A DNA stretch of 64,000 bases. Origin: Paramoeba atlantica (taxonomy: Eukaryota > Protista > Discosea). The notes beneath the pieces were generated by a model, which saw nothing but the letters and a program-made list of their open reading frames with translations, was not told the origin of the DNA and made no database searches. Position numbers and translations under genes: made by a program. This document shows positions 26,881-64,000 of the stretch, piece after piece. The stretch's first letter is position 1. Each line of letters begins with the position of its first letter. Location: the NCBI GenBank assembly GCA_977017575.1, contig CDRNVI010000049.1, positions 62,001-126,000 of the forward strand, given 5' to 3'.

Positions 26881-27476
26881 TTGCTTTTCAAGTATCATTT
26901 TCTATGTGTACTTGTACAAATTTTAGTTCTTTTAGTAGTTCTTCTAGTATTCTGCTTAAATACACTTCGATGAGTATAGATTCTGTTCGAGACTCTCGAA
27001 TTTTATCTCTATTTTACTCTTCGCTATTCTTTAAACAAAATTCTAAACAAAATTCTTTGATTAAGGGACAAAATCAGTTTTTACGTTTCTTTCCTCAATG
27101 CGTACTCACTCCATGTAACATACATACCAGTAGTACAATTGGTACGTACGCACCATGTAAACTCAATAAACAGCGGTAATTAACTTCATTTTTTTCTGTC
27201 CCGTCGGTCGGTACATGCATACATATATTGTCATCTAAAGACGTAGTGTTCACCTTTTACCCTACCACGCAACACAATTATCCAATATATTTCATGACAC
27301 TCCCTAAACACCTTACTTCCTCCATTCTCTTCTCTCCTTTTTCAAATTTTCACCTCTAATTTTGTTTTTCCACCTCATCATCCCATTCTCCATAAAAACA
27401 ACAACAACAACACCATTTTTATCCTTTAAGATTTTACCCTTTAAAACCAAATCTTCTTCCCTCCCCCCTCCCTCCC

Positions 27477-30008
27477 ATGGTCAACTTCACCGTCGATGAG
27501 GTCCGCGACATCATGAACCGCTCCTCCCAGGTCCGCAACATGTCCGTCATCGCGCACGTCGACCACGGCAAGTCCACCCTCTCCGACTCCCTGGTCGCGG
27601 CCGCCGGGATCATCGCGGTACAGAAGGCCGGGGACGAGCGCCTGCTGGACACCCGGGAGGACGAGAAGAACCGCGGGATCACCATCAAGTCCACCGCGAT
27701 CTCGATGTATTACCATGTGGAGAAGGCGGTCGTGGCGGATCTCCCCGACAAGCAGCGGGACTTCCTGGTGAATCTCATCGACTCCCCGGGGCACGTGGAC
27801 TTCAGCTCGGAGGTGACCGCGGCGCTGCGGGTGACGGATGGGGCGCTGGTGGTGGTGGACTGCGTGGAGGGGGTGTGCGTGCAGACGGAGACGGTGCTGC
27901 GGCAGGCGCTGGCGGAGCGGATCCGGCCGGTGGTGATGGTGAACAAGGTGGACCGGGCGCTGCTGGAGCTGCAGCTGGACCCGGAGGAGGCGTACCAGGG
28001 GTTTTGTAAGACGCTGCAGAATGTGAATGTGGTGATTGCGACGTACAATGACCCGGTGATGGGGGATTTGCAGGTGTACCCGGAGAAGGGGACGGTGGCG
28101 TTTGGGAGTGGGTTGATGTCGTGGGCGTTTACGTTGCCGCAGTTTGCGAAGATGTACGCCACGAAGTTTGGGGTGCCGGAGGAGAAGATGGTGGAACGGC
28201 TCTGGGGGGATACGTTTTTTGACGCGAAGAATAAGTGCTGGGTGAAGTCCGCCGAGGGCGCGAACGGTCGTCTGAAGCGAGCGTTCTGTCAGTTCTGTCT
28301 GGACCCGATCTACCAACTGTTCGACGCCGTGATGAACGAGAAGAAGGAAAAGGTGGAGAAGATGCTCACTTCGTTGCAGATTCATCTCACCAACCAAGAG
28401 CGTGAACAGTCCCCGAAGCGGGTGTTGAAGACCGTGATGCAGAAGTTTCTCCCCGCCGCCGATGCGCTGTTGCAAATGATTGTCCTGCAGCTGCCCTCCC
28501 CCGCGAAAGCCCAGAGATACCGTGGTGAGATGCTCTACAACGGCCCCACCGACGACAAGTACTGTCAATCCATCCAGAACTGCAACCCCGAAGGGCCTCT
28601 GGTGCTGTACATTAGCAAGATGGTCCCCACCGCGGACAAAGGGCGGTTCTTTGCCTTCGGCCGTGTGTTCTCCGGCAGAGTTCGCACCGGACAGAAATGC
28701 CGCATCATGGGTCCCAACTACGTCCCCGGCACCAAAAAAGATTTGTACGAGAAGAAAGCCATCCAGCGTACTGTCCTTATGATGGGGCGCTACCAGGAAT
28801 CCATTGAGGACATTCCCTGTGGTAACGTCGTCGGGCTTGTCGGGGTGGATCAGTTTATTGTCAAAACCGCCACCATCACGGATGAGGAGGAGGACGGCTG
28901 CTACCCGCTCAAGGACATGAAGTACAGCGTCTCCCCCGTCGTCCGGGTCGCCGTGCAAGCCACCGATGCCGCAGATCTCCCCAAACTCGTCGAAGGTCTG
29001 AAACGTCTCGCCAAGTCCGACCCCGTCGTGCAGTGCTCCATCGAGGAGTCCGGAGAGCACATTATCGCAGGAGCCGGGGAGCTTCATTTGGAAATTTGTC
29101 TTAAAGATCTCCAGGAGGATTTCATGAACGGTGCGAAGCTGAAGATCTCCGAGCCTGTGGTGTCCTATCGTGAAACTATCACCGAGCCCTCCCGGATTCA
29201 GTGCATGTCGAAGAGCCCAAACAAACACAACCGGCTGTTCTGTAAAGGGGTACCGCTGGGAGATGAGCTCTGTGCGGATATCGAAGACGGCAAGGCAGGC
29301 GCGGATGCAGATATGAAACTCCGAGGCAAGCTGCTGGTCGAGAAGTACGACTGGGATGCCACGGACACCAAGAAGATCTGGTGCTACGGCCCCGAGGGGA
29401 GTGGACCGAATGTGGTCGTGGATGTCACCAAGGGGGTCCAAAACATGCATGAGTTAAAGGACTCGTGTAACGCCGCGTGGCAGTGGGCCACCAAGGAGGG
29501 GGTGATGTGCGGGGAGAACATGCGAGGAGTGCGGATCAATATCGAGGATGTCACGATGCACGCCGATGCGATTCACCGTGGTGGGGGACAGATTATCCCA
29601 ACGGCCCGCCGGGTGTACTATGCGTGTTGTTTGACCGGGGAACCGCGGTTGATGGAGCCTGTGTTTCTGCTGGATATCCAGACCATTGAGACTGCGATGG
29701 GAGGGATCTACGGTGTACTCAACCGTCGTCGTGGGATTATGATTGGTGAGGAGAACCGTCCCGGGACCCCGATCTACAACGTCAAGGCGTACATCCCGGT
29801 CGCAGAGTCCTTTGGGCTCACGGCAGATTTGCGTGCAAACACCGCAGGGCAAGCCTTCCCGCAGTGCTGCTTTGACCACTGGCAGGTGTTCCCCGGGAAC
29901 CCGCTGGAGGCAAACACGATGGCCGCAACCACCGTCGCTGCCATTCGCAAGCGTAAGGGTTTGAAGCAAGAGATTCCCGACCTCAACGAGTACTTGGATA
30001 AGCTGTAA
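27477..30008 (+). CDS. EEF2: Translation elongation factor 2
   Basis: [49 protein letters not shown]; kinetoplastid-like [13 protein letters not shown]. Confidence 0.99.
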
Positions 30009-30546
30009 GTGGGGTACTCTTTGTGCTGGGGTCTTGGTATCCGAAGGAAGGAGGATAAGTTGGTTGATACTCTGCTTTTTATTACTGAACTTGAATTTGT
30101 ATTTTGAGAAAGCGCATCGAAGGATGCTAAATAAAGAGGGCGTAATTATTGTCCTGTTGAAGTTTTTTTGATTTATCATGAGGTTTTATTCCATTTATTT
30201 TTTGGCAAAATAGGCTAGTACTTAAACAGTTTTCAGACATGTAAAGTGATCGATGGGCTACTTAATGAACGTTAATGAAAGTATTCGGAATCTATTTACT
30301 TACCTTTAGCTCATATTTTCGATGGTTCCATACGTCTATTCAGATTCTCTTAAACGAACTTAGTGATACAGTGTATCTATCTAGTAGGGGAACTTGGTAC
30401 CCAAGGTTCCGTTATCTTTTGCTACATATTCCTATGATTTTCAATAAAAAGGCTAGTCGAGTTTTTTCCACGTATGTTTTCTCTAGATATGTAGACCCGA
30501 GCGACCCAGTTTCGCAAAACTTGAGAACTTAACGAAAAAATACAGC

Positions 30547-33500
30547 ATGCCACCTAAGTCCGCTTACGCGCTGCGAGCAAGGATTTGGTCTCCCGGAAAA
30601 GTTTTCTCTGAATCGAATTCTTTAGTCGTCTCAAGGCTCACAAGCGGGTGCTTCACATTTTCAATGAGGAACATCAAAGACGCGATTCGGAGGGGTGAAC
30701 AAACAAAAAACGAATTTTCAGTTCTGGTTTCCGAAAAAATCGTGCTCTTTTCCTTTCCTCCTGAACACCATTTCGTACCCGCTGAGTATTCATCCCATAG
30801 TCCATGTCCGCAAAAAAGACCAACCGCTACACCAACCCGTCCTCTATCCCCAATCCCATCCTCCTCCCCCCACCCACCCCCTCACCACCCCCGCAATTCT
30901 TACCTCTTCTCCCAGACCCGCTCCTACGCCACAACCCCCACCGCTTCTCATCTCTCCTCAAACCCTCATTCTACTAGTATTTCTATTTCTTCGAATTCTT
31001 CTTCTTCTTCTATTCCTTCGAAATCTTCCTCTTCCTCCCCCTCCACCTCCCGTACCGCGACCGATCCCTCCCACCCCTGCCACTTCGCTCTCCACAAAAT
31101 CTCCTGGCACGTGATGACGGGGAAAACGAAATGCTTCGTCGACAGCCTACTCCCCCACGCCCCCCACCTCCTTACCCCCCAGGAGACGCAGCAGATCGAA
31201 AGAGACTACGGCAGTCTCCTCGAGTTTCTACAAAAACATGAAAAGTTTTTTGTGTTGAAACAAGAAGCAGCGGGGGAGGGGGAGAAGGGGGGAACCGCCC
31301 ACACAACAACGACAACAACAACAACAACAGAGGAAACCTCCTGTGGGGGAAATGAACGAAAAGGTCGACGACTGCCCTCAAATTTGTCGTTTATTCATTT
31401 CGCACAGCTCCCGAGTACACAAAAAGAACACAGGGGTTCGAATGGAACCAAAGAGAGTGAAAAACCACAACCCGCACAGCGTTGGGTCGTGACCCATAGG
31501 GTAACGCGGGAGTTACTGGGCCATCTGCAGCATGCAGCGGTGTCGACACTGATGGCTCGAGGGGGTGGGAAGACCCCGTTGAATGTGTCTGTACTTGCGG
31601 GGTATATGCCCCGGGAGGTACGCTCGTTTGCCACAGGTTGTGGGTGTCCCAGCTTTGGGGATTTCCTGAAACGGTATTTTCCGCATTTGATGTCGGTACA
31701 TGTTTCCGCGGTGAAGACGATGATCACGGTGGATCTAGCGAAATCATGTGTGTGTCCTTTCAGGGGTAAAGCGGAAGTTCCTTCTTTGGAAATGATGCGG
31801 CGCAACTTCGTGCTGAGTATGTCCGAAAGCGAACGAGGTGAACGACTGGCGAAGAGTGTAAACAGGGAGACACAAAAAATAGAACACGAATCACGTGTGT
31901 TGAAGACCGCACATGGGAAAAATTATGTACCTGTGTTAGGAGTTGTAGCAGACCTTATCTATGAAGTTCTCCCAGAGGATGGCACACAGATCGACATGGA
32001 TTTAGAGATCAAACCTCAGCTTCCTGTGACCTACAAGATGATTCCTCAATTAGGCAAAAAGCTTGCCTCATGTGAATTCCCAAAGCTTTCCATTAGTCTA
32101 AATGACGGTCGATACCATTTTGGCCGAAGAATGAACAAGGACAATTCACTTATAAAGGACAAGAACGGAAAGGCGTTCCCTATGGTCGATATTCTGACAT
32201 CAACATCTGTCAAATGTAATTTGGATGACGCTTCTGTAGTCACGCTGCCAAGTAGCGCTATCTCGAACCTGGTCGACCAAATGGTACCTCTTCTCCCATC
32301 TGACGGTTCGGAAGTACGCATCGATGATCCCATGTTTAAAGACATTTTCGGTGTCGGGGCTCCCATTCTGGGTCTATCCAAAAAGATATTCAAATTAAAT
32401 CACAAAAAAATCTATACTCGGTACATTGGGACGCAATACTACGTAAAACTTCGACCTGAGGCTGTGGACCAAGATTTAGCCAATGAACGAAAGGCGCTGG
32501 ACATTGCCTTTTGGAATGCCGGGCTCTACCTTGAGCGCTCTCCGCTTCCGATGGAAACGCATCAAGCATTTCGAACACTACGGGATGCGCTTCCCGCGGA
32601 CGGGACTGCGCTGGAGCTCGAGGAGGCAAAAGCCTTACTACCACATCTGGCGCCCTGCTGGCCCGCTGGTATGGCCAAAAAGCTCAACGCGGAGAAGGGA
32701 ATTAAAGTCACCCAGGATGCCGCAAATGGACTGCACTACGTCGCTCGCTCGGATGTGTACGACGGCAGTGAGAGTCTTCTCCAATCTGTGGTCTCGAGCC
32801 TGAACGAACCAAAGGTTTCCTCTTCCCCCGATACAATGAAGGGACTCACTCCGGACTACACGGGTTTGAATCTTGATCTCACGGGGGCGTTTGAGAAATT
32901 GTGGAATATTGTGCCTACAACTTGGGTCGGGACGGACTATTTGATGCCCTACCTGAAAGGAACATTCGCAGATCTCAGCTCCCGACGTATTTTGCTACGT
33001 ATTGCTGTGGAATTTTCAGATTACTTTGAGTTTAGCGTTGGGCACGCAAAAATGAATCTCCTTTTACGGGAAGAGCGTTTTGACATGTATAAAGTCCCTT
33101 TTGAGCCTGTTATACGAAGACGAGTGCGCATCTCACCGGATGCCATTCCTGTGTCTGTCCTTTTGTCTTCCACGTCCGGGGAGAAGCCGTCCAAGGAACC
33201 TGAATTAGGCGTTTCGTCCGAGCCGGACTTCGCGGAAGAATGTGGTGAGCCGATTCGAAATACGAAGCCTAGAAAGAAAGAAAAGTCTTTTCCTAAAGTA
33301 GAGAAATCGAATTCGTTAGAACCAGAGGACAAAGACACCCACTCGACTCCACCATCCGTACTCCCTAAGGAAGGCGAAAAATCCGCTAGCGCTAAGGCCA
33401 GTGCCACAGACGACAGTACTGTGGACAAAGAAGCAGAGGAGGAGGAGGACGAAGAAGAAGACGTGGATCTTGACGAATACGTCTTCCCTGAGTTCTCCCG

Positions 33501-36111
33501 CAAGTCACCGATTCAAGAGCTCACATCTGACTTTGTCCTGCGCCTTGCCTTTGCCACCCCTTCCCACCTCACCCCGATTCCTCGCATCGTGGGAGGATTC
33601 CCCCCGGGCCTGCGGGAGGACTTGGTCAAGCACCGGGCCTACTTCGACGCGATCGCACGAAAATGTCCTTCCCTGTTTCAATATTTAGATCAATCTCCGG
33701 TGGATGATAAGGCAGACGGAAAGAGCGACAATGTGCGAGTAGGAAACGCGTCTACAGGGCTTGTGCGAAGTTTCGTACATGACCTCGCGGCATCTCCAGG
33801 CTCATCTTCCCAACCAACTCCCAAGGAACGCGAGGGAGAGGAATCTGTTCTTCTGCGGCTGCTCATCAACGTGGTACGGGAACTCAGCGGCCGTGCCGGG
33901 GGCTGTGCCGTCGAGGACATCTCACTGGCTCTAAGCCCTGAGGAGCTGAATCGCATGCCACAGAAGGACGTGGAGGGTATGCTCACCGCCCACCCCGATA
34001 TTTTTGAGATCAGCGACGACGGGTCGCTGGTCTCTGTGCGAGCAGAAAAAGAACGCCTGCGTACGCTGTTCTCCTCCAGGAATGAGAAGCGGTCGAGGGG
34101 TCGTAGGAACCGCCATGGGGTCATGGTGCAAATCGACACCCATCGGGGCAGAAAACGCCGCACGGTGGCTCAAATGGTCACCCTCTCCGATGAGCTCCCC
34201 GAGGGGGGCATGTCCGAGGCCGAGATCACCGCCGCCGCCCAATCCTTCGCCGCCTCCCACCCCACCCTCGTCCACGACCTCCACGAGCAACTCCTCAGCA
34301 CCCATCACCCCCTCTCCCGGGACCAAATCACCGCCCTCCTCTTCTACACCACCGACGCCTCCCTGAGCTGGAAACGGGAAAAACGTCTCCTCGAGCGCAT
34401 CCGCTCCCTCAACACCACCACCAACACCTACAACGACGAGCGCTCCCTGATCCAACACATCGTCGACAGCCTCCCCGCCATCGGGGAGGTCAAAGTCAGC
34501 ACCCTGGTCCACGCCCTGCTCGACCACGCCGCCCTCCAGGTCCTCCCCCCCTCCCTGCGGGACCTCTTCGACGCCTACCACGACCTCCTGGCCTACCGCG
34601 TCGACGACACCGGCATGTGGGTCAGCCGGCCTCAACAAACCCAGGGGGTCCTCCCCGAGGGCCACACCAGTGCCTACCAGCGGGAGGACCCCAGCCGGGC
34701 CCGCAGACACCACGCCCGGGTCGCCACGAGCACCGCGACGGCCGCGCTCGACCCCATGGCCTTCCCCTTCCCCCTGCCGCGGGTGGGGGATGAGGAAAAG
34801 GTCCTGGCGTTCGCGATCCCCCCGTTCTCGATGCTCGGGGATGAGGCGGTGAGGTTCCAGCTGCCGCAGACGCTGCGGTACCTGGGGCAGGAGGGGCTGG
34901 TGCGACGGTACAGGGGGGTGCTGGAGACGATGCCGGGGAAGAAGGTACGGTGGCCGTACGTGTGTCGGCGCACGGAGGTGGAGATGGAGGGGGGGGGCGC
35001 AGAGGAGGCGGAACAGGGTCAAAAAGAGTTTCGAAAAGGAGAGAGCCCCGTGGATAAACAAGTGGAACGACGGTGGGTGACCCAGATGATACGGTTGTTG
35101 CCGAAGGAGGGGAAACCACGGCGGCTGGAGGAGATTCGGGGACGGGTACAGCCGGATTTAAGGGCACAGGTCCCGGAGAGTGCGGAGGTGGGGATTTTAC
35201 AGCGCTACCCGAGCTATGTCAATGTGGAGGTGACGAATCTGGGTGGGGGAGGGGGGCGAAATTTTTTGGGCAGCCCCGAGAGGAGGGAGAGCTCAAATGC
35301 AGGAATAACAAAGGAGATGGCCCCAAGCGACCCGTCGTGTATTGTTCGTTTGCGGCGGTCGTTTCGGTTGGTCGCGTTAGGGGAGGCCCGGAGGAATTGG
35401 GCTGTGGTGATGTACGCCCTGGTCGCGCTGAATGTGAAACATGTGCAACACAACGAGGCACGGAAGTCCGAAAGGGACATTCCCGCAGAGAAAAATGCAC
35501 TCGAAAAAGTGTACGTGCCTGAGGTCACGTTTGAGGAGTTCTACACTAACACACTGCCACCGAACATGAAGCAGGTACTTCGACGGGAGGAGATATTGGA
35601 TCTGTTGGAGCGATGTGTGTACGTGGAGCTGTGTGACGCTTCGGGTTCGGGTCCCGCGGACGTGCAGAAGCGTTTGCCCGCCGTCATCGGGTCGCGCTCC
35701 ATGGCAGGGAGTAATAAAGTCATCCGGGAACGTGCGTGCTATGGAGCGAGAATGAATAATGAAGCAGGAGACGGCACGGAGGCCGCCGATGGGGAAAAGG
35801 TACCCGGGGCTCCCCAACGTGTAGACGAGGTGGCGCTTACGGAGGCAGTTGAGGCGGTGCGGAAGCTTACCTTCAACGATACCACCGGTAAAATTTTTGC
35901 AGATCTTTCCATGGTGGGGAATCTCCTCCACCCTTCCCACTTGCTTATGATACGTTCCTTGCATGAGACGTCGGCGAAGTTTTTCGTTTCCTATCCGGAT
36001 GTATTCGAAGTGCATAAAATCAGAACGGGGATACACGGCGTCCGTCTGATTGATCCTAAAAATCTTGACTCCCGACGCGGCCTGCGCTCGAATCAGGCTT
36101 CTACGATATGA
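30547..36111 (+). CDS. 1854-aa hypothetical protein with repeated OST-HTH/LOTUS-like winged-helix motifs; start uncertain
   Basis: Long uninterrupted ORF; recurrent motifs GSLLEFLQKHEKFFVL, SFGDFLKRYFPHLMSV, VEGMLTAHPDIFEI, SLRDLFDAYHDLL, SAKFFVSYPDVFEV. Confidence 0.8.
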   Translation: MPPKSAYALRARIWSPGKVFSESNSLVVSRLTSGCFTFSMRNIKDAIRRGEQTKNEFSVLVSEKIVLFSFPPEHHFVPAEYSSHSPCPQKRPTATPTRPLSPIPSSSPHPPPHHPRNSYLFSQTRSYATTPTASHLSSNPHSTSISISSNSSSSSIPSKSSSSSPSTSRTATDPSHPCHFALHKISWHVMTGKTKCFVDSLLPHAPHLLTPQETQQIERDYGSLLEFLQKHEKFFVLKQEAAGEGEKGGTAHTTTTTTTTTEETSCGGNERKGRRLPSNLSFIHFAQLPSTQKEHRGSNGTKESEKPQPAQRWVVTHRVTRELLGHLQHAAVSTLMARGGGKTPLNVSVLAGYMPREVRSFATGCGCPSFGDFLKRYFPHLMSVHVSAVKTMITVDLAKSCVCPFRGKAEVPSLEMMRRNFVLSMSESERGERLAKSVNRETQKIEHESRVLKTAHGKNYVPVLGVVADLIYEVLPEDGTQIDMDLEIKPQLPVTYKMIPQLGKKLASCEFPKLSISLNDGRYHFGRRMNKDNSLIKDKNGKAFPMVDILTSTSVKCNLDDASVVTLPSSAISNLVDQMVPLLPSDGSEVRIDDPMFKDIFGVGAPILGLSKKIFKLNHKKIYTRYIGTQYYVKLRPEAVDQDLANERKALDIAFWNAGLYLERSPLPMETHQAFRTLRDALPADGTALELEEAKALLPHLAPCWPAGMAKKLNAEKGIKVTQDAANGLHYVARSDVYDGSESLLQSVVSSLNEPKVSSSPDTMKGLTPDYTGLNLDLTGAFEKLWNIVPTTWVGTDYLMPYLKGTFADLSSRRILLRIAVEFSDYFEFSVGHAKMNLLLREERFDMYKVPFEPVIRRRVRISPDAIPVSVLLSSTSGEKPSKEPELGVSSEPDFAEECGEPIRNTKPRKKEKSFPKVEKSNSLEPEDKDTHSTPPSVLPKEGEKSASAKASATDDSTVDKEAEEEEDEEEDVDLDEYVFPEFSRKSPIQELTSDFVLRLAFATPSHLTPIPRIVGGFPPGLREDLVKHRAYFDAIARKCPSLFQYLDQSPVDDKADGKSDNVRVGNASTGLVRSFVHDLAASPGSSSQPTPKEREGEESVLLRLLINVVRELSGRAGGCAVEDISLALSPEELNRMPQKDVEGMLTAHPDIFEISDDGSLVSVRAEKERLRTLFSSRNEKRSRGRRNRHGVMVQIDTHRGRKRRTVAQMVTLSDELPEGGMSEAEITAAAQSFAASHPTLVHDLHEQLLSTHHPLSRDQITALLFYTTDASLSWKREKRLLERIRSLNTTTNTYNDERSLIQHIVDSLPAIGEVKVSTLVHALLDHAALQVLPPSLRDLFDAYHDLLAYRVDDTGMWVSRPQQTQGVLPEGHTSAYQREDPSRARRHHARVATSTATAALDPMAFPFPLPRVGDEEKVLAFAIPPFSMLGDEAVRFQLPQTLRYLGQEGLVRRYRGVLETMPGKKVRWPYVCRRTEVEMEGGGAEEAEQGQKEFRKGESPVDKQVERRWVTQMIRLLPKEGKPRRLEEIRGRVQPDLRAQVPESAEVGILQRYPSYVNVEVTNLGGGGGRNFLGSPERRESSNAGITKEMAPSDPSCIVRLRRSFRLVALGEARRNWAVVMYALVALNVKHVQHNEARKSERDIPAEKNALEKVYVPEVTFEEFYTNTLPPNMKQVLRREEILDLLERCVYVELCDASGSGPADVQKRLPAVIGSRSMAGSNKVIRERACYGARMNNEAGDGTEAADGEKVPGAPQRVDEVALTEAVEAVRKLTFNDTTGKIFADLSMVGNLLHPSHLLMIRSLHETSAKFFVSYPDVFEVHKIRTGIHGVRLIDPKNLDSRRGLRSNQASTI

Positions 36112-37406
36112 CGATCGGGGCTTCAAAGTGGTATGTCCTATAGCGAACGAGCCTCTTAAAAAATGGTTGATGCCATCTTAATATGTGATTGCACTATTTT
36201 ATATAAACAACGTTTAACCGCATTAATGTTTAGAAGTTTTGGGTGGTATGCCTTTTATAGGTGCACAGTTTAAAACAAAGGTGATTCTGTGCATCTGTTT
36301 ACATGGGTGTCCATTTCACTGCTTCGCAGTAGAAGACCTAAAAAACTTTTTATTTTCCCCACATTTCTTTGAATGAACACTAAAGACATTCCTTCGGGGG
36401 AGGTTATCGAGCCATCGGAAAATAGGGCACCCACGATAAGTGCTCAGAAGGCACGAAAGATTGCACGAATATTTGATGAGTATCTTGGTTTTCTGATTGC
36501 ACGTTTCAAGCAGAATCCTCAGCAAGAAAATTCGGAGGTTTTTGTCCTACGAACCTTGCACGAGTGGTCTTCCAAAAAGTTGGAATCTTCTAGGAAAAAT
36601 GTGCAACTGAAATCTATTCCTTAGCGTTTGCTCATACGTTTTCGTTTTTATATGGCTCCGGGAAAACTTGTTTGGCCTGTTCTATTGACGTATATCACGT
36701 GTTTTCCTGTGGGTAGATTTCCACTCTTTTGTACATTCAACCCCCCGATTCGAATACATGTACTTTGTATTCAAACCGCACGTTAAACATTTCGTTGAAT
36801 TCTGCACAAAAAATGTTGATAATCTATTCGAGATCGCTTTTAGTTTCTGGCACCGCACCTGCATCAATGCGAATCCGCCTAAAAATGTGAAACGTCGCAT
36901 TACCGACGGGAAATAGTTTCTACTGGAAACACTTCAGTCTCCAAACACATGTTTGGAGAAGTCTTTGAGAGAAACAATTCTTTCTTTTTCTTTCTTTGTA
37001 CTTTGTTTCAACCAAGAAGTTTTTAATGTTGTTTAAAAAAATGCTTTTTTCATCTTCTGTTTTGTTAAATTCTATAAAAATCTTCCTACTACATATTTAA
37101 AATGAAAATGCAACGTCCCGTAAAAATACACAATACACTTCGAACCATATAACAAAACCAAACCCCATACCATTCCCACCATAACACTCATCTCCCTACA
37201 CCTTTCCATTCATACCCAACACCTATATTATTATACCCTTCACCTTTCCATTCCCACCCAACCTCACCTCTACCCCTATCACCTTTTTCTCCTTATTATT
37301 ATTTAATTTATATTATTATTAATTATAGGAATAATTAAAATTTATTTAATTTTTATTTCCTTATCCACCCTATCTCCTTTTTCTCTTTTTCCCTCTCTCT
37401 CCCCCC

Positions 37407-38180
37407 ATGGGTAAAGTCGTCCTCGCGCAGCGCCGCGGCAAGGGGTCCGTCTTCACCTCCCACACCCACAAGCGCAAAGGGGCCGCGAAGCTCCGCAAGC
37501 TCGACTACCACGAGCGCAAAGGGTACCTCCGCGGGGTCGTGCGGGAGCTGCTCCACGACCCGGGCCGCGGGGCGCCTCTCGCGCGGGTCGAGTTCCGGCA
37601 CCCCTACCGCCTGCGGCGGGTCTCGGAGCTCATGGTCGCGACCGAGGGGATGTACACGGGGCAGTTCGTGTACTGCGGCCGCAAGGCGGACCTCGCGGTG
37701 GGGAACACCCTGCCGCTGGCCGCGATGCCCGAGGGGTGTGTGGTGTGCAGCGTGGAGAGTAAGCCCGGGGACCGGGGGAACCTGGTGAAGGCGAGCGGGA
37801 ACTACGCCCTGGTGATCTCCCATAACCCGGAGACGGGGCGTACGCGGCTGAAGCTGCCGTCGGGGCAGAAGAAGAGTGTGGTGAGTGCGTGTCGCGCGAC
37901 GGTGGGGATTGTCGCGGGTGGGGGGAGGGTGGAGAAGCCCGTGTTGAAGGCGGGGAACTCGCATTGGCGGTTCCGCGGGAAGCGGAATAACTGGCCAAGA
38001 GTGCGGGGTGTTGCGCGAAACCCCGTGGAACATCCTCATGGAGGAGGGAACCATCAGCACATTGGTCACCCCAGCACGGTGTCTCGACACTGTCCCCCGG
38101 GGCAGAAGATTGGGCTGATTGCGGCCCGACGGACGGGGCGGATGCGAGGGGGGAAGAAAGATGTGCGAAAGGAGGAGTAA
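37407..38180 (+). CDS. RPL8: 60S ribosomal protein L8 (uL2)
   Basis: [51 protein letters not shown]. Confidence 0.99.
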
Positions 38181-38486
38181 GGGAAGTTTTGTTCTTGTTT
38201 TTGTTTGATTCAAAGAAAGAGTGAAGAAGGAAGTGTAAAAGGGGTTTGAGAAGATTAATGTGCTATCTAGATAATCATGTATGGAGAAAAGAGGTGTGAA
38301 AGAAAGAATATGAAAAGAGTGTATTTCCTGTTCTTATCTGAAAATGCATAATATCTGAAAATGCAATTATGATTCATTGCGAAATACTTTTTTACGTTAT
38401 GTTGTCTAAGAACGACAGAACCTTCTCTAATCAGCTTCCTTACTTTTATTTTCTCTCTCCCTTATATACGTTTTCTCCTCTCATTC

Positions 38487-39122
38487 ATGGGCCCTATTAG
38501 TAAAACCAAAAAGTTCGTCGCCGACGGTGTTTTTTACTGCGAACTCGATGAATTCCTCCAGCGCCACCTCGCGGAGTACGGCTACTGCGGCGTGGAGCAT
38601 CGTGTCACCCCCCAGCGCACCGACCTCTACATTCGTGTCACAAAGGCACGCGAGGTCATGGGGCCGAAGAACGTCCGGCTGCGTCAGCTTACCGCTCTCG
38701 TCCAGCAGCGGTTTAACTTCCCCGAGGGCGGGGTCGCGCTGTTCACCGACCGGGTCGTTCGCCGCGGCATCAGTGCCGCGGCAATGGCCGAGTCCCTGCG
38801 GTACAAACTCCTCGGGCAGGTCGCCGTCCGCAAGGCGTGCTACAACACCCTGCGGTTTGCCATGGAGAGTGGTGCCCAGGGGATTGAGATCGTGGTGAAG
38901 GGAAAGGTCCGACAACAGCGTGCAAAGTCGATGAAGTTCCGCCAGGGGTACATGATCAAGAGCGGGGACGCCACGGGGTCATTTGTGGATAGTATCAAAC
39001 GGTCGGTGTTGCTACGGCAGGGGATTATGGGCATTAAGCTGTCGATCATGTTGCCCGCAGGGGAGCCTGGTGTAAAGGCACAGCCTGATAAGTTTGAGAT
39101 TCCGGAACCTAAGGTTGTGTGA
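38487..39122 (+). CDS. RPS3: 40S ribosomal protein S3 (uS3)
   Basis: [46 protein letters not shown]. Confidence 0.98.
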
Positions 39123-39386
39123 GTGGAGAATTCGAAGTCAGGAAAGGGTCCAGCGAAAGTAGGAAAGAGGTTTAAGCGGAAAATGAATGAATAGCAAAAA
39201 AGTTGAATGTTTAATACAAGGACCGTTCAGTCATTTGTATTTTAGATCAAAATCATTCGTCAACTTTAGAAAATGTTTTTCATTTATTATGTTTTTATTT
39301 AGGATATTAAAAAAAATCTCCCTATCCCACCAATCTCATCCGAAAACAAAATCTTTTCCTTTTTTCCCTATCCCACTCTGTCTATC

Positions 39387-41036
39387 ATGATGAAACGCGC
39401 ATCTTCTCTCCACCCCCTCCGCCTCTCCTCCCCCTCCCTCCCCTTCCTCCTCTCCCTACGGCACCAATCCCGCCGTGGACCCCCGGGAGGTCCCCTCGGC
39501 GGCTCACCCCCTCCCTTCGGCATGGGTTCCGACCCCCGCGGTCCCCCTCCCCCCGGCTACCCCGGCCATCCCCAACCCGGCTACCCCCCCGCCGGAGCTA
39601 TGGGCTACCCCCCTGACCCCCGCATGATGCCACCCCATGGAGGGCCAGGCGGCCGCCCCCCCATGCCCCCTCCAGGAGCCCCCTCCGGAAACCTTGACCC
39701 CGGTTATGGCTACCCCAGTAGCACTCCACCTCACCCAGGAGCCATGTCTCGAGGAGGAGGCATGTCTTCCTCATCCGTGCCTCCACAATTTCAACAACAT
39801 CAACAACAACAACCTCCTCAATTTCAACAACAACAACAAGCACCATCTCAATTTCAATCCTCACCATCTCAATTTCAACAACCCCAACAACAGCAACCCT
39901 CCCCGCCCCCCTCCCCCCCTCCCCGTCCCTCTCCCCCCCACTTCCTCTCCCTCGAGAACGTCCCCGAGGATAAGGCCACGTCCCCCATGGGGAACGGCAT
40001 CGTCACCCTCTCCCTCGCTCGGGGCAAACAAAACAATGCGCTCCACCTCGAGACCCTACAGGAACTCACCGCCTGGATACACTACCTGGGGAACCACGAC
40101 CAGGTGAGGGGAGTCGTGCTGACCGGAAAAGGAACACCGGGGGGGTTAAGCGCGTCAAAGGAATCAACGAAGGCGTCAAAGGAATCAACAAACGATTCAA
40201 AGAGTGACTCAAAAGACTCAAAAGATGCTTTAAAGGACTCAACCGATGCTTTAAAGGACTCAACCGATGCTGTAAAGGAATCAACAGATGCTTTAAAGGA
40301 ACCAACCGATTCTTTAAAGGAACCAACAGGTTCTTTAAAGGACTCAACAAACTCTTCAACGGTTCTCCCCACGCTTTGTTTCAGCACAGGTCTGGACCTT
40401 GCGGAGTTCATCGCGCCCAACAAGGAGCGCTTCGAGGCCTACTGGGGACTCGTGCAGGAGACCTGGATGCTGTTGACCTCATTTCCCAAGGTCCTGGTGG
40501 CCGCGGTGGTGGGGGAGGCCAGGGGTGGGGGGTGTTTGCTGGCCATGACCGCGGACTACCGCGTGATGGTGAAGCCACAAGCGGGGAGTGGGGGGGAGAA
40601 GAAGGGTAAAGAAAACTCCCCGGTGATTGGCCTGGATGATGTCTCTCGTGGTCTTACGGTGCCTCCGTGGTTGATTGGGCATTTGGCGTATTTGGTCGGG
40701 GGTCGACGTGCGGAGCGTATGGTGCAGCTGGGGGAGTGTCTGGGCGCACAGGAGGCGGCACAGGCGGGGTTGGTGGATGAGGTGTGTGAGGACGTGAAAA
40801 CCTGCCTCGCCCAGGCTCATGAGATGGCGCAAAAGCTGGCGGAGATGCCCGAGCAGGGGCGGTGGATGACGAAGGATATGGCGCGCCGGGAGTTGTTCCG
40901 GTTCCTCAGTGAGGAGGAGGACCGGAAGTATGATGTGGAGTTTTTTAGCAAGTTTGTGCAGCACCCGGAGGTGCAGAAGAATTTGGTCGCGTCAAAGCGG
41001 GAGGCAGAGGGAAAGTCCGCGGAGGGTGAAAAGTAG
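39387..41036 (+). CDS. ECI1: Enoyl-CoA delta isomerase (crotonase family) with Pro/Gln-rich N-terminus and a heptad-repeat insertion
   Basis: LSLARGKQNNAL, FSTGLDLAEF, GEARGGGCLLAMTADYRVM, IGLDDVSRGL, AAQAGLVDEV; N-terminus resembles a mitochondrial presequence. Confidence 0.85.
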   Translation: MMKRASSLHPLRLSSPSLPFLLSLRHQSRRGPPGGPLGGSPPPFGMGSDPRGPPPPGYPGHPQPGYPPAGAMGYPPDPRMMPPHGGPGGRPPMPPPGAPSGNLDPGYGYPSSTPPHPGAMSRGGGMSSSSVPPQFQQHQQQQPPQFQQQQQAPSQFQSSPSQFQQPQQQQPSPPPSPPPRPSPPHFLSLENVPEDKATSPMGNGIVTLSLARGKQNNALHLETLQELTAWIHYLGNHDQVRGVVLTGKGTPGGLSASKESTKASKESTNDSKSDSKDSKDALKDSTDALKDSTDAVKESTDALKEPTDSLKEPTGSLKDSTNSSTVLPTLCFSTGLDLAEFIAPNKERFEAYWGLVQETWMLLTSFPKVLVAAVVGEARGGGCLLAMTADYRVMVKPQAGSGGEKKGKENSPVIGLDDVSRGLTVPPWLIGHLAYLVGGRRAERMVQLGECLGAQEAAQAGLVDEVCEDVKTCLAQAHEMAQKLAEMPEQGRWMTKDMARRELFRFLSEEEDRKYDVEFFSKFVQHPEVQKNLVASKREAEGKSAEGEK

Positions 41037-41450
41037 TGCGGAAGAAGCTGTCCATGTTTTAGCGAGCGAGGTGTTGATGGCGATAATTATTTTTAATGAA
41101 AACGAATGGATCCTGTAGGCGACGATGGTAGGCTTCGTGTAATTTTTTTTGTGTGTGGCATAAAATTCTTTTCTACCGCACTTATTACACAACTTTTGTT
41201 TGTTGCATGTTAATTTTCCTTTGATAAGTAAGAACAAATCAATACCTTTGTATGCATCGATACCTTTTTTACGTATTGATCTGTGCCGTCTGATAACGGT
41301 CTTTGTCCCGGACAGTACTATTGATGCGAAATTCAAATTGCATTGAAAAATATCAGTAAATACCCGCAATATCGTTATTTTTTGATGAGCTAGTCGATCA
41401 TAGGAATACATCACGCTACTATTTCCGTTTATGTCCGATTTCTACTAAAC

Positions 41451-42227
41451 ATGTCAAAAAAGAAGCATGCACGCAGAAAGGAAAGGGTCGTGAATGAGAG
41501 CTCTGATCAAACTACCCGCCAAAGCAATGACGAGGAACAGACAAACGATTTATCGGCCGTTGAACAAAATCTAAGAAAAATAAGTTTGGCTAATCAGCCT
41601 TTGCAAGAGAATGAGCCTCACAAACCCTGCGTTCTTTCCGAGCTCTACACCGTCCCGCACCGACTCCCTGAGGTAAGTTACTATTTCACGCAGTACAGCG
41701 GCCGTGAAGAGGAGCTCGATGCCATTATGCAGCTCATGGCAAGTGATCTCAGTGAACCCTACAGCATTTTTACCTATCGCTACTTTCTAAACACCTGGCC
41801 CGATCTTTGTGTGCTGTGCAAGTTGCAGCAACAGAATCCCTCGAAAGGGACAGCGAAGTCGAGTTCTACGGGAGAGAACGTCCCAGAATCTGGAACTAGC
41901 CTCTCGGATGCAAGCGAGGATCCTATCATTGGATGTATTATTAACAAAGTAGACCGAAAAAGTCAGGCACATCCTCTGCGGGGATATATTGCCATGCTTG
42001 CGGTGGAGAAGAAATACCGAAAATGTGGCATCGGGTCCGAACTTGTGTGCGCAGCGGTTGATTTAATGAAACAGACAAAATGCGAGTGGGTGTATTTGGA
42101 GACTCCAATTGAGAACAACGGAGCGCTGCGTCTGTACGAGAATCTCTCCTTTGCCAGAGACAAACGATTGGCGAAATATTATCTTTCCGGGAGTGACGCC
42201 TTCCGTCTTAAGCTTTGGCTTTCCTAA
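41451..42227 (+). CDS. NAA30: NatC catalytic N-acetyltransferase (Mak3/NAA30)
   Basis: DLSEPYSIFTYRYF, RGYIAMLAVEKKYRKCGIG, LYENLSFARDKRLAKYYLSGSDAFRLKLWL. Confidence 0.95.
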   Translation: MSKKKHARRKERVVNESSDQTTRQSNDEEQTNDLSAVEQNLRKISLANQPLQENEPHKPCVLSELYTVPHRLPEVSYYFTQYSGREEELDAIMQLMASDLSEPYSIFTYRYFLNTWPDLCVLCKLQQQNPSKGTAKSSSTGENVPESGTSLSDASEDPIIGCIINKVDRKSQAHPLRGYIAMLAVEKKYRKCGIGSELVCAAVDLMKQTKCEWVYLETPIENNGALRLYENLSFARDKRLAKYYLSGSDAFRLKLWLS

Positions 42228-47308: not shown

Positions 47309-47609
47309 AGCTAGACACAAAGCGTAAGTAAGACACACAGTATAAGTAGAGCTAGACACCCTTTTTTCTATTTTTTTTTTCTTTTTCTTTTGAAAGTAAT
47401 TGTCCTTAAACATTCTTACGTCTTTGTGCTTGTACTTTTGACTGAAAGTTCAAAAAGAAAATTTCAAGCAATGTTACAAGTTGCTTTAAACCCCCATATG
47501 GACACATGTAGAGATACATTGGCCACTATGGTGGATAAAATCTTACCTCTTTTCTTCGATTATAGCTTTGTTCTCTAGCCTCTCTCTGCCTCTCTCTCAC
47601 TCCCCTCCC

Positions 47610-48176
47610 ATGGAGGTCAACGAGGCCATATGGAAAGCTCAGGAAGATGTCCATCGACTCCAGGACGAGCATGAACAAGAGTTGATGCAGCTGGAACAAA
47701 AAATGTGGAATGAGATCCAACCCGCTTTGGACCAGCGCGACACCCTGGTGGGAAAAGAGTTCCCCTCCCCTGGGGAGTTCTGGTGGCGTGTGATGACACA
47801 TCCCAGCTCGCCGATGTTTGAACACGTCGACAACGCAGACGAGCGTTTCTTTCGAGCGCTCACCGATGTGAAACTCACCGCCCATGGCAATTTTATGAAA
47901 CTTACCTTTCGGCTCTCTGCGAATCCCTTTGTACAGGATGGGGAGCTCTGGCGTGTGGGGCGATTTACCGACCCGGAAGTGGTCCCGGATAAACTCTTCA
48001 GCGGGGTAAACTGGAAGGATGGCACCGAGAAGATGCGTGAGAGCAGCTTTTTAAACTTTTTTTGTGAAAAAGCAGATGAGGATCAGGTCGGGGAGGTCTT
48101 TGAAGCGCTGTGCAATGATGTGTATCGCAGTCCGTTGAAGTATTTGAGTTCAGGGGCGGTTCCGATTGCGCTTTGA
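47610..48176 (+). CDS. NAP/SET-family histone chaperone
   Basis: N-terminal helix, then EFWWRVM, KLTFRLSANPFV, SGVNWKDG, SSFLNFF, CNDVYRSPLKYL; start MEVNEA follows a pyrimidine tract. Confidence 0.85.
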   Translation: MEVNEAIWKAQEDVHRLQDEHEQELMQLEQKMWNEIQPALDQRDTLVGKEFPSPGEFWWRVMTHPSSPMFEHVDNADERFFRALTDVKLTAHGNFMKLTFRLSANPFVQDGELWRVGRFTDPEVVPDKLFSGVNWKDGTEKMRESSFLNFFCEKADEDQVGEVFEALCNDVYRSPLKYLSSGAVPIAL

Positions 48177-63603: not shown

Positions 63604-64000
63604 ATGGAGTCTTTTTGCGGCGACAAGGACGCACTGCAATCGTACCTTCATGAAGCGTTCGCTACTATCGAAGCGTGTTCCAAAGCAGCGGCTCAGCTTC
63701 CTCGTGGGGACGAGTTCGACTACGCGAGTGTCTTCGAAGAGTTTTCCACCCCGATACAGCAAAGCACGGAGGCTCTTGTTCAAGTACTACGGTCTTTGTG
63801 GGGGTCGCACTTAGGAGAAAACAGTGAAGTTTTGCAGTCCATTCGAAGCACTCAAAACGCTGCCACACTGCAGTCGATCGTGCTGCAAGGATTGCGCACG
63901 ATGCTAGAAAACGTAGATACCTGTCTCGATGAACTCTCGGGACAGAAAATGAAAGGCGGCGATCAAGAGGCTCTTCAGTTCGACAATAATCAGACTGCCT
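63604..64000 (+). CDS. RRP6: Exosome subunit RRP6, N-terminal PMC2NT region (runs off the window)
   Basis: Hand translation MESFCG...KAAAQLPRGDEFDYASVFEEF...MLENVDTCLDELSG. Confidence 0.7.
   Translation, partial: MESFCGDKDALQSYLHEAFATIEACSKAAAQLPRGDEFDYASVFEEFSTPIQQSTEALVQVLRSLWGSHLGENSEVLQSIRSTQNAATLQSIVLQGLRTMLENVDTCLDELSGQKMKGGDQEALQFDNNQTA

Follow-up and report, generated by a model that had tools for sequence, protein, structure and literature searches.

Mirror-image C-to-G strand-skew islands inside genes of a prokinetoplastid genome

Within single protein-coding genes of contig CDRNVI010000049.1 (assembly GCA_977017575.1), the plus strand changes abruptly from C-rich to G-rich, and it does so repeatedly. 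Which process acting on DNA could turn the two halves of a gene into compositional mirror images? Strand skews caused by transcription, replication or recombination usually amount to a few percent and become visible after genome-wide averaging; here, the silent sites of one gene go from ~90% C to 100% G. With so high a contrast, the genome is a natural test case for which DNA transaction makes local strand asymmetry, and for whether kinetoplastids have initiation zones within polycistronic units. We analyzed ~90 kb of it, including a 64,000-nucleotide (nt) stretch of this contig (positions 62,001 to 126,000), referred to as the window, and a 21.6-kb locus (L011) ~65 to 87 kb upstream of the window, taken from the matching contig of a second assembly. 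The original prediction, made from the window, had regarded the pattern as an undescribed chromosomal feature. In agreement with this, literature searches on Perkinsela and other kinetoplastids yielded no description of skew islands, and nothing at this strength.

Strength and extent of the skew flips

GC and AT skew were computed in 300-bp windows, and flips were located as minima of the cumulative skew. A series of genes, all on the plus strand, extends from ~25.5 to 54.5 kb; it includes CK1, EF2, a large conserved open reading frame (ORF), RPL8/uL2, RPS3/uS3, an enoyl-CoA hydratase gene (ECH), a GNAT acetyltransferase gene and others. GC skew ranged from about -0.75 to +0.46. C-to-G flips were detected at 27591, 31180, 34778, 37611 and 40101, with a weaker one at 47928 and another in RPS3 at ~38830, confirming the places proposed before. 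To the left of a flip, the plus strand is rich in C with almost no G; to the right, it is rich in G with almost no C. The flip itself spans only ~150 to 300 bp and the arms are 0.4 to 1 kb long, which gives islands of 1 to 2 kb. GC content is maximal (0.65 to 0.74) at the sign change.

A change of sign at fourfold degenerate sites had been named as a test of the pattern. We ran this test, and the change was present in EF2, the large ORF, RPL8, RPS3 and ECH. In EF2, the C/G counts changed from 22/5 at 27477 to 0/30, 0/25 and 0/23 at 27852-28002 (within ~400 bp), were 22/5 again at 28902, and then turned weakly toward G. The large ORF (1854 amino acids [aa]) changed from 27/3 at 34147 to 2/26 at 34822, RPL8 from 21/9 to 4/27, RPS3 from 16/2 to 4/13, and ECH from 27/1 to 3/12. 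When clustering of C versus G at the fourfold sites along each gene was tested with 2000 permutations, these five genes showed P ≤ 0.0005 and variance ratios of 4 to 8. Clustering was not significant in CK1, the CDC16-like TPR gene and the Plus-3/RTF1 gene, the three genes expected to lack the pattern.

The switch had first been described as one from C/A-rich to G/T-rich sequence, and its C-to-G part was borne out. The overall AT skew, however, did not change sign across the GC-skew flips in 300-bp windows, and the A/T effect was confined to twofold synonymous sites. In C arms, pyrimidine-ending codons had 81% C and purine-ending codons 65% G; in G arms, purine-ending codons had 86% G and pyrimidine-ending codons 53% C (background in each case, ~40%). 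Where a silent change must be a transition, the disfavored base was partly replaced by T or A.

The asymmetry is not limited to coding sequences (CDS). In the 250 nt that precede EF2 and RPL8, G makes up 1 to 4% and C 34% at a GC content of 0.35 to 0.38, and the 200 nt downstream of these genes contain 7 to 11% C and 24 to 26% G. For comparison, C is about equal to G (0.15 to 0.19) in the flanks of non-island genes of the window and L011. The two RPL8 flanks reported earlier as almost devoid of one base had 1 to 3% G (spacer 37100-37392) and 6% C (38181-38369). In the AT-rich island flanks, total GC is at background and A is about equal to T: G is swapped for C or the reverse. The G-free upstream stretches precede the spliced-leader site (27430 for EF2; the RPL8 transcript contig starts at 37393) and are therefore outside the mature mRNA.

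Runs of three or more G concentrate on the plus (sense) strand of the G arms, and runs of three or more C in the C arms. The CpG observed/expected ratio is 0.86 to 1.19 at the island centers and at most non-island extrema, with two weak outliers (0.44 and 2.07). A search for inverted repeats or palindromy between the arms found none; the arms are mirror images in composition only. CCCGGG is present at the flips and was rejected as their common motif, since it also occurs at 20 sites in the window, a small excess over chance.

EF2 and the 1854-aa ORF had been thought to contain two cycles each. This is true of EF2, in which the second cycle is weaker, and the large ORF has a complete internal cycle at 34 kb. 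For the first cycle of the large ORF, a correction is needed, its C arm being mostly upstream sequence; the alignment with Perkinsela orthologs begins only well inside the ORF, and an independent gene call places the start near 31114. The internal island has an abrupt C-arm onset, a flip at ~34700-34780 with a GC content of 0.73, and a G arm that decays. It falls in the most conserved part of the gene, which is colinear with the Perkinsela ortholog across nearly its full length. Correction of gene models, named in advance as a possible full explanation, therefore fails for this island, and gene-model error was rejected for it.

The islands share a characteristic size and occur patchily along the chromosome, without being tied to gene ends. 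They are enriched in, yet not confined to, genes for abundant proteins. The expected placement within highly expressed genes holds only in part, since the large ORF and RRP6 have mid-gene islands. The array is also not uniformly dense: no skew island was found in L011, which carries low-GC3 genes (GC3, GC content at third codon positions; |skew| ≤0.30). In L011, eRF3 displays a mild C-to-G version. The RRP6 gene, which encodes PMC2NT, 3'-5' exonuclease and HRDC domains, has its island past the end of the window (fourfold C/G counts, 23/2 to 1/23).

A lineage-specific pressure at the DNA level

An assembly artifact was ruled out by the agreement of independent data. The second assembly was 99.65% identical to the window across 22 kb, Logan contigs from two runs covered 33500-38378 with the same sequence, and transcript contigs from two transcript sources matched the window at 99.9% identity. 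Depth and contig mapping on the window relied on assembled contigs (Logan) only.

EF2 is 89% identical to a cluster containing EF2 of Perkinsela sp. CCAP 1560/4, 85% identical to EF2 of the free-living prokinetoplastids PhF-6 and PhM-4, and 76% identical to that of Bodo. eRF3, encoded on the same contig of the second assembly, is 71% identical to the Perkinsela protein; the value for other Perkinsela lineages is 84 to 86%. Judged by these identities, the genome belongs to a prokinetoplastid outside the sampled Perkinsela clade. Its source is probably another Perkinsela-like endosymbiont.

We compared the same genes in three Perkinsela-lineage genomes. The C-to-G flip was absent from them; C (and T) is used throughout, with hardly any G. 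The flip was also absent from two metagenomic EF2 relatives. The Perkinsela poly(A) polymerase (PAP) genes have a mild C-to-G gradient. Using the orthologs as a control, we found that the reported shift in protein composition is real. In the C arm, G minus C at codon positions 1 and 2 of the same aligned codons was -26, compared with +4 to +24 in the three orthologs; in the G arm, it was +27, compared with -6 to -15. Relative to the orthologs, Leu, Thr, His and Gln were gained in the C arm and Val, Arg, Gly and Glu in the G arm. The pressure on the DNA thus prevails over protein sequence.

The GC3 of the island codons exceeded that of the rest of the gene by 8 to 14 points in Perkinsela and by ~25 to 35 points here. 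Ancestral GC-richness of these codons was therefore slight only, and the small Perkinsela excess indicates that the rise in GC belongs for the most part to the lineage-specific phenomenon. Because the asymmetry affects flanks outside the mRNA, shifts amino acids and is absent from the three Perkinsela-lineage genomes, we conclude that it reflects a lineage-specific, DNA-level pressure and is neither a codon preference nor a gene-model error. The composition can be put into a single rule: the strand running 5' to 3' outward from the island center loses cytosine, mainly by C-to-G change where this is tolerated and by C-to-T change where a silent change must be a transition. A separate influence raises the GC content in the core.

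Processes that could generate the islands

The closest known kin of the islands are CpG-island-type skew and fungal gene skew, from both of which they differ in strength and location. Their mirror symmetry, sharp flip, arms of 0.4 to 1 kb and independence from the mature mRNA point to a DNA-level process that runs outward. Our preferred explanation, which we hold tentatively, is that R-loop-prone transcription running outward both ways from the center may repeatedly leave one strand single-stranded. The C-losing strand is the nontemplate strand of outward transcription, and also the lagging-strand template of outward forks. Sense transcription would expose it over the G arm and antisense transcription over the C arm. 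The displaced strand would lose C by deamination, or abasic sites would be bypassed with C inserted opposite. G enrichment would then yield more R-loop-prone RNA and bring the strand closer to the G/T-rich directional RNA polymerase II (Pol II) promoter elements of Trypanosoma brucei. Such a feedback, in which G-rich sequence promotes R-loops, R-loops promote C loss, and C loss makes the strand still more G-rich, would account for the near-saturation. On this view, what mammals have in CpG-island promoters with bidirectional skew, this kinetoplastid would have in its islands. Animal mitochondrial DNA also has a near-saturated fourfold skew, attributed to long single-strandedness of one strand. 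In contrast to the local mirror-image islands, that skew is genome-wide, of a single polarity, and of a transition-type spectrum.

Outward R-loop-prone transcription is favored because the arm length fits the size of R-loops and because clusters of G runs start and extend R-loops. It is also favored by two published systems. At transcription start regions of T. brucei, coding-strand elements with G/T runs drive directional Pol II initiation (PMC5579346); a divergent start region therefore reads C-rich and then G-rich. Mammalian CpG islands exhibit bidirectional asymmetry plus a weak-to-strong (W→S; A/T to G/C) signature (PMC2817419).

Both parallels have limits. As described by Polak and Arndt (2009, PMC2817419) and Ginno et al. 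(2013, PMC3787257), mammalian CpG-island promoters have in common with the islands a GC-rich region of ~1 to 2 kb, a central sign change, an outward-pointing G-rich strand, and a W→S signature in the core. We indeed found GC-rich islands with outward G-rich strands on both sides, as in the CpG-island type. However, the islands lie inside coding sequences of a polycistronic unit, are far stronger (fourfold skew, -0.9 to +1.0), and have a CpG observed/expected ratio of ~1 everywhere with no methylation contrast, and the transcription start at their center is putative. The GT-rich dispersed Pol II promoters of T. brucei (Wedel et al. 2017, PMC5579346) have coding-strand G runs that set direction, and G runs are likewise enriched on the sense strand of the G arms. 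These promoters are located at boundaries of polycistronic units, whereas the islands are inside one same-strand gene run, and T is enriched here at twofold synonymous sites only, not overall.

Several points weigh against R-loop-prone transcription. Antisense and internal initiation, and R-loops at the islands, are hypothetical. A divergent promoter within a gene would be unexpected given the polycistronic units of kinetoplastids, and a sense start at the flip would leave out the 5' part of the host gene. C loss alone does not raise the GC content of the core, for which either codon selection or W→S-biased conversion is needed as a second force. Four strong flips, those of EF2, the large gene, RPL8 and RPS3, sit 150 to 350 bp past the ATG, which also fits a gene-anchored process. 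The direction of substitution is unpolarized (54 strain differences, no close outgroup).

A broader version of R-loop-prone transcription holds that the islands are gene-internal bidirectional initiation zones for Pol II, and possibly for replication, which are kept by a runaway loop and arose in one prokinetoplastid lineage. We regard this as possible but doubtful. If true, it would mean a kinetoplastid with local, single-gene transcription control, and a natural mutational self-organization strong enough to rewrite conserved proteins.

The islands could instead be efficient bidirectional replication initiation zones, at which the exposed lagging-strand template loses C and thereby creates an upward skew jump. 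The origin-like polarity that had been pointed out was confirmed insofar as the order of C on the left and G on the right is that of center-out processes in bacteria and mammals, including bacterial origins and mammalian CpG-island and N-domain jumps (PMC2817419). The flips are sharp, and kinetoplastids can have thousands of low-efficiency initiation sites (PMC12890776). The analogy fails in other respects. The arms are gone after 0.4 to 1 kb and give way to neutral stretches in the same gene instead of persisting to a terminus, and flips are as near as 1.2 to 1.4 kb to each other. The AT skew does not flip, unlike the joint GC and TA jump of bacterial and N-domain origins, and the GC peak is unexplained. 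The mapped origins of T. brucei (PMC13179062), also a kinetoplastid, share strand-specific G-rich elements flanking the center, and they overlap R-loop signal. However, they are intergenic, AT-flanked and of opposite G polarity, whereas the island centers are intragenic with a GC content of 0.56 to 0.73 and have their G runs downstream on the plus strand. A resemblance to these origins is confined to the AT-rich troughs between islands: in the one trough inspected, a purine-rich 3' untranslated region (UTR) is followed by a pyrimidine tract, with matching polarity. We therefore consider replication origins unlikely, and less likely than R-loop-prone transcription.

Equally improbable in our judgment is an extreme form of the gene-anchored skew of unicellular fungi, arising from mutational regimes that differ between phases of transcription or RNA processing and amplified in GC3-rich, highly expressed genes. 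Genes of these fungi have a 5' C and 3' G coding-strand bias that likewise affects fourfold sites, amino acids and flanks (PMC3315797). RPL8, RPS3, ECH, GNAT and NAP each have one C-to-G change, with skew into both flanks, and mild gradients exist in Perkinsela PAP and L011 eRF3. The fungal bias, however, is a weak statistical trend that occurs once per gene; the islands are of fixed size, can be mid-gene, are repeatable within a gene, and nearly saturate silent sites. The EF2 G arm ends after ~820 nt of a 2.5-kb CDS, and C-rich usage resumes. The large gene and RRP6 contain full mid-gene islands with neutral sequence on either side, and island size does not scale with gene length. Moreover, genes of one polycistronic unit should have common transcription phases.

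We assign a similarly low likelihood to recombination or repair hot spots with GC-biased, strand-specific heteroduplex correction. For example, nascent-strand-directed repair together with T- or A-removing glycosylases would favor G on the strand resynthesized outward from a break. The central GC peak decaying over ~0.5 to 1 kb has the geometry of a conversion tract, the twofold sites favor one strong base per arm while the other is nearer background, and meiosis genes have been reported in a related Perkinsela (PMC5601477). Against this, hot spots of this kind would not be expected to remove nearly all of the other strong base from noncoding flanks at unchanged GC. Plain GC-biased gene conversion treats G and C alike, at odds with the 81 to 86% versus 53 to 65% observed here. 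A strand-asymmetric form, on which this explanation relies, has to our knowledge been established nowhere. Two variants were ruled out: if a central break were resected, deamination of its 3' overhangs would give the opposite polarity, and breaks in the AT-rich troughs followed by resection would suit short genes and fail for EF2, the large gene and RRP6.

Selection at the transcript level (avoidance of mRNA structure, a codon ramp, avoidance of cryptic acceptors or pyrimidine tracts, or a useful pairing of C and G halves) is very improbable: although the strongest cases include very abundant mRNAs (EF2, RPL8 and RPS3) and the mean predicted pair span of RPL8 is 194 versus 119 ± 33 in synonymous shuffles, synonymous-codon shuffles of the RPL8 and RPS3 CDS do not exceed the native sequences in stability (z, ~-1.1), which rules out selection for weak structure in these two; the G-free spacers do not belong to the mature mRNA and have no equivalent upstream of non-island genes; amino acids shift too; and relatives of the same biology lack the pattern. 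A translational codon preference would not change within one mRNA, and it was rejected since the fourfold favorite turns from C to G within single genes while relatives use C throughout. As had been argued before, a trans-splicing pyrimidine tract does not explain the pattern, because G and C are about equally frequent in upstream regions without islands (window and L011). Nor is avoidance of cryptic AG acceptors the cause: AG is not specifically depleted in C arms, where its observed/expected ratio is similar to those of other NG dinucleotides and of control genes.

Islands, transcripts and neighboring features

The features are compiled in Table 1. The C arm of island 1 begins ~330 bp upstream of the spliced-leader site, and the fourfold sites of its G arm reach 100% G. 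Most of the C arm of island 2 precedes the likely ATG at 31114.

Table 1. Coordinates of skew islands and of the EF2 transcript in the window
Feature	Positions	Strand	Details
Mature EF2 mRNA	27430-30370	+	CDS 27477-30008; transcript contig L005
Island 1, EF2 5' end	27100-28300		C arm 27100-27650, flip ~27590-27650, G arm 27651-28300
Weaker second cycle inside EF2	28350-29750		C-rich 28350-29050, flip near 29100, moderately G-rich to 29750
Island 2, start of large gene	30700-31800		C arm 30700-31250, flip ~31180-31300, moderate G arm 31440-31800
Island 3, middle of 1665-aa conserved gene (CDS 31114-36111)	34070-35700		C arm 34070-34700, G arm 34780-35700
Island 4, RPL8/uL2 (CDS 37407-38180)	37100-38330		Flip ~37560-37610; G arm through C-poor 3' UTR to ~38330
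Island 5, RPS3/uS3 (CDS 38487-39122)	38400-39250		Flip near 38830
Island 6, ECH (ORF 39387-41036)	39250-41100		C arm 39250-40050, flip near 40100, G arm 40400-41100
Weak island, GNAT acetyltransferase gene	41500-42100		Flip near 41780
Weak C-to-G gradient, NAP-domain gene	47568-48176		Cumulative-skew minimum 47928
Left edge of further strong island, in RRP6	63950-64000		L132 7800-9100, equivalent to ~63950-65250 in window numbering

The ECH flip adjoins an A-rich repeat insert (40100-40350) that encodes a Lys/Ser/Asp/Thr repeat. An N-terminal extension of ~200 aa (39387-39980), rich in Pro, Gln and Ser, coincides with the C arm. Perkinsela ECH orthologs are shorter (400 to 464 aa), and neither the extension nor the insert had a Pfam match.

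Depth in run X4 was uneven, and a 1050-nt contig of this run lies exactly on the internal island (34449-35475). This contig has ~3 to 6 times the depth of its neighbors and a 23-nt unmatched end, and it could represent GC-biased DNA coverage or a distinct RNA. Metagenomes scanned for transcripts that span the internal island gave no hit. Differences between strains or assemblies are patchy. About 13 occur in the 360-nt EF2 3' UTR (30009-30370); the 4.3 kb from 35.7 to 40.0 kb (35700-40006) has zero substitutions and just two 1-nt indels.

Gene callers fail on the islands, producing a truncated EF2, a fragmented RRP6 and long spurious antisense ORFs. An independent EF2 gene call was truncated to 758 aa. 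RRP6 was called as a set of short ORFs, some on each strand. Within the island core, at L132 8230-8620 (~64380-64770), the frame of its exonuclease domain changes beside a seven-C run in the ENA assembly; this is probably a long-read homopolymer error, and a true frameshift is also possible. Antisense ORFs of 669, 376 and 286 aa cover the islands on the minus strand (27441-29450, 33931-35061 and 37353-38213, respectively). Such ORFs arise as by-products where sequence is skewed and GC3-rich, and they could be misannotated as genes. Codon-usage and phylogenetic analyses that assume stationary composition would likewise be misled.

The transcript contig of EF2 carries a spliced-leader tail, TCTGTACCTTGTTG, attached at 27430 behind an AG at 27428-27429, and a poly(A) site near 30370. 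The tail is similar, not identical, to the published Perkinsela spliced-leader primer; as a 14-nt query in a metagenome scan, it gave chance matches only. Perkinsela-lineage contigs (L001/L002 and L009/L010) were inspected for EF2. In two of the genomes (ERZ25071330 and ERZ25074155), two identical EF2 copies stand head to head around a GNAT gene, each side with different neighbors. A third (ERZ24894578) has two EF2 copies on separate contigs. The window genome has one EF2 at this place, in a gene order that differs from those of the Perkinsela-lineage genomes.

Positions 1-25000 of the window contain many transposon-like ORFs (DDE transposase and PIF1 helicase fragments) and a repeated 139-nt segment; no strong skew island was seen there. 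PAP is the classic intron-containing gene of kinetoplastids. In L011 (1-1810), it was called as two adjoining ORFs of 249+ and 390 aa, ~10 nt apart, as would result from a very short intervening sequence, a frameshift or an error in the assembly.

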